Origin: Salpingoeca rosetta
Lineage: Eukaryota; Protista; Choanoflagellata
Direction: 5' to 3'
DNA length: 64,000 nt
NCBI GenBank assembly: GCA_033442325.1
Contig: JAWQFM010000008.1
Span: 1,310,123-1,374,122 of the forward strand
Part shown: positions 1 to 57,237 of the stretch, in pieces
Layout of the letters: each line of letters opens with the position of its first letter
Numbering within the stretch: position 1 is the stretch's first letter
Notes under the pieces: generated by a model
Database searches by the model: none
The model's input: the letters and a program-made list of their open reading frames with translations, nothing else
What the model was told of the DNA's origin: nothing
Made by a program: the position numbers and the translations under genes

Positions 1-1329
1 CCCCTCTGGCGTTCGTCCAGCTGATGGCACATCTGCAGAGATATACAAAGACGGATGGAGCTTGTCAGACGCGCACGTGCAAACACAGCACACAAGCAAA
101 CACAGCACACACGCAAACACAGCACACACATACACACGCGCACACGCGCACGTGCAAATATCCCACAAGCAAACACAGCACACACGCAAACACAGCACAC
201 ACGCACGCACGCACACACATACACACGCGCACACACGTACGTGATATGTCCCAGAGTTTGATGCTTCCATCCCACGAGGTTGTGGCCACCGTCTGGCCAG
301 TCGGACTGTGGTCAACAAAGGTGTCGCAAGATGCACGCGCCGCAGTGACAGCATCAGCGTGGTGTGGTAGTTCATGCATGTGCTGACGGAGACACAATCG
401 CTCATACAAAGACACGCACACGCACACGCACACGCACACACACACACGCACACACACACCTACGCGCACACATCCACGCACCTGAAGTCACAGGAAGAGG
501 CGCACTGCCTGTGCCCGTGCAAGATGGAGACGCATTTGCAGCTCTGCAGGTTCCAGATGCGCGTTGTCGTGTCTGCACACGTGGACGCCATGAGCCAGCC
601 GTCCGGGGAGAAGGCGACACCAGTGACAATGTCCGTGTGCCCTCGGAACACCATGAGCTGGCTGCCGTTGTCGATGCTCCACGCGATGATGGTCGTGTCG
701 CGGGAAGCAGATATGACGATGCGGTCGTCCAGCGGGCTGAACTTGACGTCTGTGACGGCGTCGCGATGGCCCGTCAGCGCCTTGAGCTTCCGCCGCGTGG
801 CCGCGTTCCAGATGATGAGTGTGTGGTCCTCGGAGCCCGAGGCAATCAGGCGGCGGCCCGGTGGCGAGAAGCAGCATGCCAAGACGGGCGCACTGTGACC
901 GACCAGCTTGGACAGCATCTCGCCCGTGCCCGTGACCCACAGGATGACGCTCTCGTCTGTTGAGGAGGAGGCGATGGTGCGGCCGTCCGGCGCGAACGAG
1001 ACGTCGTTCACCTCCAGGCTGTGGCCGCGCAGCGTGCGCATGACGCTCCCTGTGTCTGTGTTCCAGATGCGGACGGTCTTGTCCTTGGACGCCGTGGCCA
1101 GGATGTGGCGGGTGCGCGGGGAGAAGGCAAGCCCGTTGATGCGGTCATGGTGCCCGCGCAGCGTGTGCACCTCGTCAAAGTTGGCTGTGTTGAACACCTT
1201 GGCGGTCTTGTCCTTGGACGCGGACGCCAGCAGGGATCCGTCGCACGAATACTCCAAGGTCAGCGATGGGGTGGCATGCGCCAGGACGGTGCGCAGCAAC
1301 CGCTCGGCATACATCGTATCGGCGGCCAT
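1..1329 (-). CDS. WD40-repeat protein (3' end runs off the window)
   Basis: ORF 460..1362 has repeated GH...WD-type units (GHHDRINGLAFSP..ASKDKTVRIW; GHSLEVNDVSFAPDG; GHTDIVTGVAFSPDG). ATG at 1329. GT-AG splicing links exons 1329-482, 305-241 (FSPTGQTVATTSWDGSIKLWD) and 32-1. Confidence 0.85.
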
Positions 1330-47326: not shown

Positions 47327-49865
<2,539 letters not shown>

Positions 49866-50378
49866 CGCGCGGTGGACACTGTAATGTGATATGTGTGTGT
49901 GTGTGTGTGCGTCTGTGTTGGTTTGTTTGTTTGTCATTTGCCTCATGAGCAGCCTCTCCTTCTCTCTTCCTGTCCTTGTTATCTGTTTGTGCTGATGTGT
50001 ACACAACTGCTGCCACGGACGTGTGTCACTCATTGTTTGGTGCAATGTGAAGGAAAGGGCTGAAACGACATGGACTCCAATTAAAGAAGCAGAAAGAAGT
50101 GAGATTCAGATGCATGCATGCAGATAAGAAAAGGGGGTGCGAACAGTGTGGAAGGCGAGAGAGAAAGAAAGAGAGAGATCCGAAACGAAACGTGCATTCA
50201 TTCAAAGAGAAGAGCGAAGAGAGAGAACACACACGTGACACAGTAGCGAGAGCAGATAAGCGAGCCGAGTGAGGGGAGCAACATAGGGGAAGGGAAGAAG
50301 GGGTGGGGGGAATAAATCAGGAAACAACATCAGCCGACGACTGAACCAATTAGTCATCAACAACACCACCGCAAATCA

Positions 50379-51857
50379 TCACAGGTTGGTATCGACGTGT
50401 GTCTCTGCTGCGCGCGTCACCCAATATGCAGCGATGCTCGTCACCATCCATTCCAGCAGCGCGCCTGCCACGCACAGGGCGAAAGGGAAAATCGTGCGTG
50501 CGTGTTTGTGCATGTGTGTGTGTGTGTGTCGTGTCGTGTGTGTCGTGTCGTGTGTGTGTGTGTTTGTGCATGTGTGTGTGTTAGCGACGTGGGATGAGGG
50601 AACGAGGCAGCAATCGCCGCAGACAATCAAGAGTTGCATCAGAGACACGTACCAACGGCAACAGACATCTTGCGAATCTGCTTGCACGGCGTCTCCTGTC
50701 ACAACAACAGCAATTATTCGGCGTGAGGAACAAGCAACAGCACGCGTGCGAACACGTATCAATGCTCCTGCATGCTTTAACTCAAGACACACACATACGC
50801 TACGCTGCACACACGCACCCACAGACGCTACGCTACACACACGCAATACACGCACGCACACACGCATGCACGTGCACGACAAGACTCACGGCGACGGGAG
50901 CGAGCTGTGCGCGTGTGCGGTGGATGCGGTCGTCTGCGAGCATGTGCGGCATCGTCGACATGACCGCCTTGATGTACTCGTGCGTCAACAGATTCTTCAC
51001 GTTTGTCCACACACTCAGGTCCTGCTTCAACAACCTGGTGATGGGGAGGGTAAGGGGGTGTGTTAAGGGGGTGGAGTGTGGTTTGCAAGTGGATGGCATG
51101 TATACAATGCATGTGTATTGCCGTTTGATTGACAAGAATGCACGTAAATTCACGACACGCACACGCACACACACATATGCATACACACACATATGCATAC
51201 AGACACACGCACACTCATACATATGCAAGCGACTGACTTGTTCTTGTGGTCTGTGAGGAGCATGGAGGCAGCAATGACGCGTTGAAGGGATTCGTGTGTG
51301 CGTTTGAGCGCTTTGATCTCGCGCAAATGCCCAGCGGTAATCGGCTGTGATGGCGGTGGGGAGATGGTGCACAAGCAACCACATGTGCGCAGGGAGTTGG
51401 TGAGGTCCGAACATGTGCAAGCACACAGGAGTGTGATGTGAACATAAGCCAAACAACCACACATATGAGCACACACAAACACACACAAACACACACAAAC
51501 ACAAACACACACACACAAACACACACAAACACACACACACAAACACACACACACAAACACACACAAACACACACACACATATCACATCACATCATCTCAC
51601 ATCATCTCACATACTCATACACACACACATCACAACCCTCACCGCGACGTGGGTGGCGAGGGGCTCGACGGCTGCGAATCGGATGAGCGCAGACATGAGG
51701 CGGCGCTGGGCGTGGATCCAATTGCGGAGATACACGCCAGCGACCGGCAGCTGGAGTGGAGAGATGGAGGGTTGGATGGGGGAATGGGATATGTGGATGT
51801 ATGTCATGATGAGGGCGATTGTGGGTCATTCAACAGTAGCAAGTGCGACTTGCACAA

Positions 51858-51895
<38 letters not shown>

Positions 51896-51912
51896 ACTCA
51901 CACACACACACA

Positions 51913-51955
<43 letters not shown>

Positions 51956-53542
51956 ACACACACTCACACTCACACACACACACACACACCTCCTGGTCGG
52001 GGTCCCGTGTGAGTGAGCGTTCAATGAGAGGATCGAGGAGGTGGAGGGTGTGGCGATGGCGGGAGAGCCAGCGTCTCGCATCAAAAGATGCCACGTGCGT
52101 ATGAAGGTTTCTATACAGCGATGAGGTAGGGCAGAGGTGTGAGGAACCAGCCGACAACAAGCAAACACACACACATACACATGTGGGAACAGAAATGGAG
52201 GTGAGAGTGTGTTGGCAAGTATGTTTGTACACGCACGTGCACCACAGTTCACACACATAGAACCACACTGAGACATACACACATACACACATACACACAT
52301 ACACACACACACATGTACACACACACACACACCTGCGTTTGATGATGCGCCTGAGGGAGTCCCACGCTGGAAGGTGGTCTGTGTCCTCATGCACAAGCTC
52401 AAGCGCACACAGCACCGCCGCCGTCACAATCGCGCGTAGTTGCAGCGAGGCCGCGCGTGTGCGTGTGAGCTCCGTCAGGTAGTCTTGCGTCACGCTGCCA
52501 TCGACACGTGCCTCAAGCTCAATGGCCGCCGTCAGTGCAGACAGCTCGTCCGCCACTGCTGCCAGATATGCCTTTGGTGTTGTCTCTGCGATGGAGACCA
52601 GCGTTGCATCCTTCTCCCGTGCTTGCAGCGCGTGGAGCTCCTCTGCGCTCGCCAGTGTCGCTTGCAGCGGTGATGGCGCAGCCGCATCTACTTGCTCTTC
52701 ATCTGCACCAGGACCATCCTCCTCACTGGCTGCTTCCACTGGTGGTGTTGCGTCAACTGCTGGCAGTGTTGCTTCTGCTGGCGGTGTTGTTGTTGTTGTT
52801 GCGTCTGTCGTGGTCACATCTGCTAGTGCTGCTGTTGCGTCTGCGTGACCGGTTGCAGAGGACTGCTGCTCATCACCCGCTGAAGTTGTTGTTGCCTCTG
52901 CATCGTGCGCGCTGCCCTCGATTTCACCCGTGCCATGGTCTCGTTCACTTGGCACCTGTGCCTGTACGTCATCCTCTTCAGCGTTGGCGACAGCGCCACG
53001 ACCAGTCGGCTCCGCTTTGCCAGCGAGAGGTGCCGTTTTGTCTGAAGTCGTTGTGTCGTGCTCTGCCTCGACCGCAGTGCTGTTGGCACTTTGGTCCTCC
53101 GTCACTGACGGCGGTGGTGACTGGACGGGCTCCGCTGTGGCGGCACTTAGTGACTGTGCCTTCTCCGCTGCGCTGCCAGGGTTCTGTGCAGGTTTCTTGC
53201 GCGAGGGTGCACGACGCTGACTGCGCGCGTGTTGGTGTTGGTGCTGCTGCTGTGGACGTGATGACTGTGGATAGGACACCCTTGCCTGTGCACGGATGAA
53301 CTGACGCAGGGACCCGTGCTTGTCCGGGGTTGCCTGCTTCTGCTGCGTGGGCGTTTTCGGCGCACCTGATACGCGCTGGCGCGAGGGTGTTCCTGGCTTG
53401 CGTCGCGTGGAACCTTTCTGCTGGCGACGAGCGCGCTGCTCCCTTTCTTTTGCAGCCACAGATGCCCGCACCCGCTGGGCGAACGTGGGCCGTGTCAGCC
53501 GAGACAACCTTGCCTGTGCCTGCGCCTGTGTAGACGGGCTTG

Positions 53543-53588
<46 letters not shown>

Positions 53589-53789
53589 CTGCTGTAGCTG
53601 CTGCTTGCTGTCGCCAGCAGTCGTCATCATGCCCTGTCTTGTTGTAGTTGTTGTCCCTTGTTGTCCCTTGCTGGTGTCTGTTACTTGTTTTCCCTTCGGC
53701 ACTTCTTCCTGAACTTGCACAGACGAGCTGGCAGCGCCTGTGCTCGAGGCTTGTGCCTCCTCCTGCTTCTCCCCCGCACCTCCTGGCAT
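50379..53789 (-). CDS. Uncharacterised protein: long disordered N-terminus plus two tandem dynein microtubule-binding-domain-like repeats (start uncertain)
   Basis: Large exon (ORF 51804..53819) plus six smaller GT-AG exons ending ETHVDTNL* at 50379. The repeats resemble the dynein heavy-chain stalk head (see findings). Confidence 0.65.
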
Positions 53790-54246
53790 CTGGCTGGCTG
53801 GTCTTGCTCCCTTCGCCACTGTCTGCTGCCGTTTTGGTGTTTTTGAAGGTTGGTGACAACTGAATTCAGTTTGTGGTCTTGGTTGCTGAAAAGCTGTGAA
53901 TGTCTTCCATCAAATACCGCGCGCACCTCAAAGAACAAACGAAGGTCCGAGGGAAAACGCGGCAGGCAGTGCTGCATGCAGGCGGTGGTGGCGGTGCATA
54001 GTTTGCTGGCTAGGTGGTGTTGTGGATGGGTGGGTATGCAGACGCAGGTGCAGCTGCAGTGGTGGAGTGCAGTGGAGTGTTGGAGTGGAGTGTGTGTGAG
54101 TGTTACGCGCATGTCCTTTTTCTTCATGCGCGCTCACGCCTCTTGTTGATTGTGAACTGCTTGCTGAAGACAGACAAGCAACGACTACCCAGCCGGACAC
54201 AAACAAAGAACAAACGCCAAAACAATCAAATCAAGTCCGAAACAAA

Positions 54247-57237
<2,991 letters not shown>

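Follow-up and report, generated by a model that had tools for sequence, protein, structure and literature searches.

A predicted motor-less protein with two modules resembling the dynein microtubule-binding domain in the choanoflagellate Salpingoeca rosetta

Gene model and predicted product

The stretch of DNA analyzed here—64,000 nucleotides of the choanoflagellate Salpingoeca rosetta (contig JAWQFM010000008.1, positions 1,310,123 to 1,374,122), referred to as the window in the following—carries on its minus strand a predicted gene, the product of which appears to end in two abutting helical modules that resemble the tip of the dynein stalk, its microtubule-binding domain (MTBD). The gene is modeled as a chain of seven exons running from 53789 to 50379 and encoding a product of 688 amino acids (Table 1). 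All six introns are bounded by GT..AG and most of them are filled with (TG)n; frame and splice phases fit throughout to a single stop codon, and neither internal stops nor frame breaks are encountered on the way. The peptides quoted in the original prediction, which had been made from the sequence of this stretch, are all found on the minus strand—two of them, RRIIKR/R/NLHTHVASFDA across intron 1 and SVAV/G/ALLEW across intron 6, only after splicing.

Intron 1 contains no stop codon and preserves the reading frame and, therefore, the raw open frame 51804-53819 continues straight through it and spans 671 codons. If this intron were retained, 74 Cys/Val-rich residues would be inserted between the third and the fourth helices of the first module (repeat 1). 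Long (TG)n/(CA)n microsatellites are present in almost every intron of the window and, hence, six-frame lists of its open reading frames are full of Cys-Val and His-Thr repeat "proteins".

An indirect hint that splicing takes place at the RNA level comes from sequence assemblies. From the region 50300-53900, 31-letter words were sampled, and the share of these that is present lies between 0.52 and 0.60 in eight transcriptome-sized assemblies from two studies and at 0.97 in DNA-like assemblies. A fully spliced mRNA is expected to yield a share of 0.573 and exon 1 alone a share of 0.431—with a sampling error of 0.026—so that the share in the transcriptome-sized assemblies fits full splicing. Codon usage ranks the proposed frame at the top of all six for the whole of exon 1, for the last 122 codons of exon 1, and for exons 4-7, in exon 4 narrowly.

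Table 1. Exons, protein regions, and neighboring genes of the predicted gene. Positions count from the first letter of the window; profile positions refer to the dynein profile described in the text.
Feature	Position in window	Strand	Residues	Profile positions	Content
Exon 1	53789-52333	minus		121-145 (end of exon)	485 codons and 2 nucleotides; start ATG at 53789, open frame from 53819; Gln-rich head, basic tract, acidic tract, long helix, first three helices of repeat 1
Intron 1	52111-52332	minus			222 nucleotides, mostly (TG)n, in frame, without stop codons
Exon 2	52110-51990	minus		147-169	Fourth helix of repeat 1; SFD motif matching NFD of dynein
Exon 3	51750-51643	minus		188-217	Sixth helix of repeat 1 (YLRNWIHAQ ... 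AVEPL)
Exon 4	51344-51238	minus		100-133	First two helices of repeat 2 (ITAGHLREIKALKRTHESLQRVIAASMLL); strongest single match to the dynein profile
Exon 5	51034-50890	minus		136-153	Third and fourth helices of repeat 2 (VWTNVKNLLTHEYIKAVM)
Exon 6	50695-50653	minus		180-189	Start of the sixth helix of repeat 2 at its end (KMSVAV)
Exon 7	50464-50379	minus		191-202	Remainder of the sixth helix (ALLEWMVTSIAAY), short tail, TGA stop at 50381-50379
Head			1-85		Gln/Thr/Gly-rich, with a long Gln run
Basic low-complexity tract	53115..53534	minus	86-225		Net charge +25, isoelectric point 12; rich in Arg, Gln, Ala, Ser, Pro
Acidic low-complexity tract	52575..53114	minus	226-405		Net charge -31; rich in Ala, Thr, Glu, Asp, Pro
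Predicted long alpha-helix	52500..52670	minus	~374-430		~57 residues; leads into repeat 1; break at GSVT after it
Two further predicted helices			~435-468 and 474-484		Break at DTDHL between them
Repeat 1	51643..52496	minus	432-562		End of exon 1 and exons 2, 3
Repeat 2	50382..51344	minus	563-688		Exons 4-7
UDP-N-acetylglucosamine pyrophosphorylase gene	~54247-57200	plus			Upstream, head-to-head; exon 1 100% identical to an S. rosetta protein
BSD-domain gene	48202-49870	plus			Downstream, tail-to-tail; acidic C-terminal region

The product had been described as basic and then acidic ahead of its helical C-terminal part, and the net charges of the two low-complexity tracts bear this out. A long helix leads from the end of the acidic tract into repeat 1: for the last 122 residues of exon 1 (52335-52700, minus strand), alignment-free AlphaFold2 predicts a helix at residues 11-67 of this piece with a block pLDDT of 66-84. 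This helix sits at the place of the first stalk helix of dynein (CC1), but neither repeat contains a helix that returns. When exon 1 was compared with the coiled-coil parts of the dynein profile, no stalk match was obtained, and a Pfam search with exon 1 yielded no domain. Where the long helix passes into repeat 1 (52460-52520, minus strand; IELEARVDGSVTQDYLTELT), a glutaredoxin segment (4i2t) is matched at E 0.04, which we take as chance.

The two repeats directly abut. A linker of just 6 residues connects repeat 1, which ends in V-E-P-L, to repeat 2, and the protein ends 14 residues past the last profile-aligned residue of the sixth helix of repeat 2. The exon pieces of repeat 1 are near neutral in charge, and exons 4-7 of repeat 2 carry net charges of +3, +2, +2, and -2.

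Likeness to the dynein tip

The reference for both modules is the MTBD that the dynein heavy chain carries on the tip of its stalk (PF12777, "MT", in Pfam), such as that of cytoplasmic dynein-1 (PDB 3ERR, as cited in PMC6629372). For the comparison, a dynein profile was built as an alignment of the stalk/MTBD stretches from 11 S. rosetta dynein heavy chains, and each exon peptide was scored separately against it. The scores of the single exons were then combined into a chain score: every exon is aligned locally, successive exons have to take successive places on the profile, and their scores are added up. Two kinds of controls were used, namely shuffles within each exon and natural decoys—pieces cut from other parts of the dynein frames.

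Even without prior constraint, the best exon chains place all seven pieces in fully colinear order on profile positions 100-217. For repeat 2, the chain on the full profile scores 58.0 bits. Shuffles score 40.7±3.3 bits, with 1 in 5000 reaching the score of repeat 2, and natural decoys 38.1±4.1 bits, with none of 5000 reaching it; the corresponding z against natural decoys is 4.9 for the full profile and 7.1 for the MTBD core. For repeat 1, the MTBD core columns alone give a chain of 35.9 bits (p 0.014 versus natural decoys). When 105 slices of dynein-derived profiles are ranked, the MTBD core comes first for both repeats, and the 104 other dynein-derived slices of 121 columns score 33.1±2.6 bits (maximum 41.3) for repeat 2 and 27.8±2.9 bits (maximum 35.2) for repeat 1.

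Among the single pieces, exon 4 matches best. HMMER, run with its filters off, aligns it to profile positions 102-132 with 7.9 bits and an i-E of 7.8e-5, which holds for a search space of one sequence, and none of 1000 shuffles reaches this match; the alignment pairs the profile line kediteikalakPPaaVklvleaVvillgek with AGHLREIKALKRTHESLQRVIAASMLLTDHK. With hhalign, the same exon is placed at positions 102-131 (E 0.0016), and A6—a profile of three exon pieces with 82 positions—at positions 99-145 (E 0.017). HMMER also puts the terminal part of exon 1 and exons 3, 5, and 6 where an alignment by eye predicts them, with scores near zero, and the registers of the best matches of the exons are reached by only 0.8-3.7% of shuffles. 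The single exons of repeat 1 gave nothing useful when compared with the dynein profile by hhalign.

On the level of single residues, the hallmarks of the MTBD are distributed unevenly over the two repeats. Both keep the first-helix Glu (E108), the Trp of the third helix (W141), A194, and the Trp of the sixth helix (W201). V126, D162 of the F-D in the fourth helix, A204, and P217 of the V-E-P end of the sixth helix are kept in repeat 1 and lost in repeat 2, and the opposite is true for S192. Apart from V126, W141, and P217, the columns named so far are near-invariant ones of the dynein alignment. The PP motif (P115, P116) is found in neither. Hence, the full set of core residues that are invariant among the 11 S. 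rosetta dyneins (P115, P116, V126, W141, P217) is kept in neither repeat, and of these repeat 2 retains only W141. In dynein, the first-helix Glu is the partner of alpha-tubulin R403, and an Arg/Lys pair after the sixth helix (H6) pairs with alpha-tubulin E416 (PMC4298687).

Judged from these alignments, the derivation of repeat 2 from a dynein tip appears secure, and that of repeat 1 is likely in view of its colinearity, its hallmark residues, and its context. The weight of evidence favors the two modules being derived from the dynein tip and either very old or evolving fast; when they were compared one by one with the 11 dyneins, none of these emerged as the parent. The protein is thus probably a highly diverged, motor-less protein of the MTBD type. 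Similarity remains below the PF12777 threshold, and stalk, PP motif, and motor are missing; hence, we would claim that the modules work or fold like an MTBD, not that they are a dynein stalk. At the sequence level, this leaves standing the core of what had been proposed originally, that is, a protein devoid of motor and stalk that bears two MTBD-colinear modules, with repeat 2 solid and repeat 1 weak. As the best overall explanation, we consider a non-motor protein with two abutting, helical, MTBD-derived modules of ~125 amino acids, to which we would assign a probability of roughly one half. That the locus is a real, spliced, single-copy gene of S. rosetta encoding MTBD-derived modules appears fairly probable.

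The neighborhood of the gene fits a product without a motor. The gene is boxed in between the pyrophosphorylase gene upstream and the BSD-domain gene downstream, which leaves no room for a motor domain. Together with the missing stalk match in exon 1, the short linker, and the short C-terminal tail, these two unrelated flanking genes agree with the original statement that no AAA ring or long stalk is present. The start codons of the gene and of the pyrophosphorylase neighbor are only ~460 bp apart and, hence, both genes probably share a promoter region.

Competing explanations

Several observations weigh against the reading as a non-motor protein with two MTBD-derived modules, and they are set out here together with the explanations that they might favor. 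The first of these accepts the descent of the modules and questions their function: the dynein-tip fold would be kept without microtubule binding, the modules would have been repurposed as interaction or scaffolding domains, and it would be the disordered tracts that perform the actual function. The absence of the PP motif and of the Arg/Lys pair after the sixth helix from both repeats points in this direction, as do the four hallmarks missing from repeat 2 (V126, D162, A204, P217), the nearly neutral exon pieces of repeat 1, and a divergence so extreme that the best exon reaches 7.9 bits. Nevertheless, neither repeat has lost the first-helix Glu or either of the core Trp residues, the net charge of repeat 2 over exons 4-7 is basic, and the same protein bears the basic tract with its charge of +25—basic tracts occur in many microtubule-associated proteins. 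We regard such a repurposing as unlikely.

The second explanation takes the likeness itself to be due to chance or convergence. Hereby, the C-terminal part would consist of one or two ordinary small helical domains unrelated to dynein, whose amphipathic pattern happens to fit the MTBD profile. Curated families lend no help to the dynein reading: in Pfam searches with each exon at E up to 10 there is no match, PF12777 included, and a PF12777 scan of the whole genome returns 16 dynein matches, none of them at this locus. The best exon stays at 7.9 bits versus a family cut-off of 24 bits and is thus below the curated threshold. An exon-wise scan of this kind can find a well-conserved domain, since PF03909, the BSD domain of the downstream neighbor, which is split by a (TG)n intron, was recovered exon by exon (positions 3-34 and 33-57 of 58). 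Searches of the sequences of solved structures with the exon pieces and A6 likewise return no dynein, the glutaredoxin segment mentioned above being the only match.

Structure prediction does not add support for a dynein tip either. For the last 122 residues of exon 1, the AlphaFold2 model has a mean pLDDT of 68, contains helices only, and finds no Foldseek match at E < 5; a piece reading through intron 1 reaches a pLDDT of 40 and has no structural match. A three-chain assembly prediction from the exon pieces of repeat 1 scores 0.01, which speaks neither for nor against the fold, and a search of the ESM Atlas by features, with a best score of 0.77, is uninformative.

Repeat 1 is the weaker half of the argument. 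On the full profile, its chain of 37.0 bits corresponds to p 0.06 versus shuffles and 0.14 versus natural decoys and is not significant alone. The likeness between the repeats is weak, too: the end of exon 1 and exon 4 match in the expected register at p 0.01, and so do exon 3 and exon 4 in an unexpected one, which shows that helices of such a composition match easily. In addition, the locus was a choice made by eye among about 250,000 scanned windows, and this selection makes p values of 1e-4 to 1e-6 less impressive than they look. Of the two tandem MTBD-like repeats that had been proposed, one is clearly above chance, with none of 5000 natural decoys reaching repeat 2, and the other is marginal (p 0.014-0.14 for repeat 1).

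Several features speak against chance. Repeat 2 lies above all 5000 natural helical decoys, and none of the 104 other profile slices comes within 16 bits of the MTBD core; the seven exon pieces fall into colinear order without being constrained to do so; both repeats independently pick the same region of the profile and keep the same two Trp and the same Glu; and HMMER and hhalign, two different methods, agree on the register. A chance or convergent likeness is, to our mind, improbable to the same degree as a repurposing of the modules.

A third explanation concerns the gene rather than its modules. The locus might be transcribed but decaying or mis-modeled, for instance as the remnant of an old partial duplication of a dynein gene, and the exon chain might in part be an artifact of picking GT-AG pairs that keep the frame. 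Such a view could draw on the coding bias, which is lowest in the middle of exon 1 (52701-53309, mostly the acidic tract), where the GC content at third codon positions (GC3) is 0.48; over the gene, GC3 ranges from 0.48 to 0.85 versus 0.89 in dynein genes. For exons 2 and 3, an antisense frame is equal to or better than the proposed one.

The absence of relatives could be read in the same way. A word-indexed protein collection of 5.8 billion clusters, queried with exon 1 and with regions 380-495 and 95-345, contains no match, not even the protein itself, and HMMER with the A6 profile finds 0 matches among 1.84 billion representative proteins. No orthologue was found in these two collections or in a metagenome scan, and searches for paralogues in the own genome return the locus itself only. 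Hence, there is no sign of purifying selection. Neither exon 1 nor the first module has a public protein, while the S. rosetta protein of the pyrophosphorylase neighbor is present, so that the deposited annotation apparently lacks the gene.

On the other side stands a first exon of 485 codons followed by six small exons that keep the frame, with canonical splice sites, a single stop, and no frame breaks or internal stops. The homology signal crosses the junctions between exons 4-5, 5-6, and 6-7 in order and would not survive in non-coding DNA, and RNA-like assemblies contain a share of words that agrees with full splicing. A non-functional locus is the least probable of the three and quite improbable on the whole. 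A recent dynein pseudogene fragment can be dismissed in view of a similarity that is much too low for it and of a frame that stays intact over all seven exons.

Known systems and possible meaning

In the exon-wise alignments, the protein shares with the dynein MTBD the order of its helices, which is colinear with profile positions 100-217, the module size of ~125 amino acids, and, in both repeats, the first-helix Glu and the two core Trp, one in the third helix and one in the sixth; repeat 1 in addition shares the F-D in the fourth helix and the V-E-P with which the sixth one ends. It differs in lacking the antiparallel coiled-coil stalk, the AAA+ ring, the PP motif, and the Lys/Arg after the sixth helix, in carrying two modules in tandem over a 6-residue linker, and in a similarity far below the family threshold. 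Within the S. rosetta genome, MTBD profile and protein searches match only the dyneins and one divergent dynein-like gene (C23:~766 kb). The MTBD of the latter is easily recognized with 19.6 + 33.1 bits and, hence, much better preserved than the modules described here. In the stretch C23:764500-768500, this intron-split divergent MTBD is seen at about 1750-2340 (LTNPPQLVKLV ... DNWE / ... SKDAHVLLEWM) as part of a multi-exon dynein-like gene.

Dynein-derived microtubule-binding parts without ATP-driven motility are also a property of the non-motile dynein heavy chains DNHD1 and DNAHX (PMC11785096). These heavy chains, with which the divergent dynein-like gene of S. rosetta is grouped here, retain the complete layout of a heavy chain, in which a degenerate AAA ring is combined with stalk and MTBD, whereas the present protein would consist of tip modules only. 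Among microtubule-associated proteins unrelated to dynein, doublecortin with its two DCX domains and the repeats of tau/MAP2 combine tandem microtubule-binding modules with charged disordered tracts. By analogy, two modules in a row beside a basic disordered region might likewise serve the static binding of the microtubule lattice; folds and binding sites are unrelated, and the likeness would be a functional one only.

The affinity of the dynein MTBD is set by the helix registry of the stalk. This suggests how the present protein could work, provided that each module still folds like an MTBD. There is no antiparallel stalk that would shift the helix registry, and the modules might thus be held in one fixed affinity state; with no stalk and no registry switching, any binding would be constitutive. 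The protein would then associate with microtubules statically and dock where dynein does, that is, in the groove within the alpha/beta-tubulin dimer. The basic tract might help through electrostatic attraction to the acidic tails of tubulin and might in turn be masked by the acidic tract. Since an MTBD has its N- and C-termini next to each other and just 6 residues form the linker, the two modules would reach at best neighboring sites—most plausibly on adjacent protofilaments. Actual binding of the protein to microtubules, as far as it can be judged from these sequence features, is a tentative proposal that we would not back at even odds. The more specific roles that had been suggested at the outset—a bivalent microtubule binder, a cross-linker, a competitor for the dynein site, or a flagellar function—are pure inference.

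To our knowledge, the dynein MTBD is known only from the end of the dynein stalk, and our literature searches for a dynein MTBD outside the dynein heavy chain found no report. The widest generalization would be that the dynein tip is an autonomous and reusable module, which escaped from the motor more than once in choanoflagellates and gave rise to a new class of static microtubule-associated proteins occupying the footprint of dynein. This is a speculative and rather unlikely scenario at present. Should the likeness be only apparent, the finding would come down to an unannotated, fast-evolving, lineage-specific gene.

If the scenario held true, such static proteins could gate dynein or compete with it on flagellar or cytoplasmic microtubules. 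A natural double tip without a stalk would show that the MTBD fold works, or is re-used, as a free module, and it would provide a natural "locked" MTBD for the study of the interface between dynein and tubulin. S. rosetta is among the closest living relatives of animals, and gene tagging and knock-outs are feasible in this organism. Maybe, a protein of this type would also point to a means by which cells could mark dynein sites or block them.

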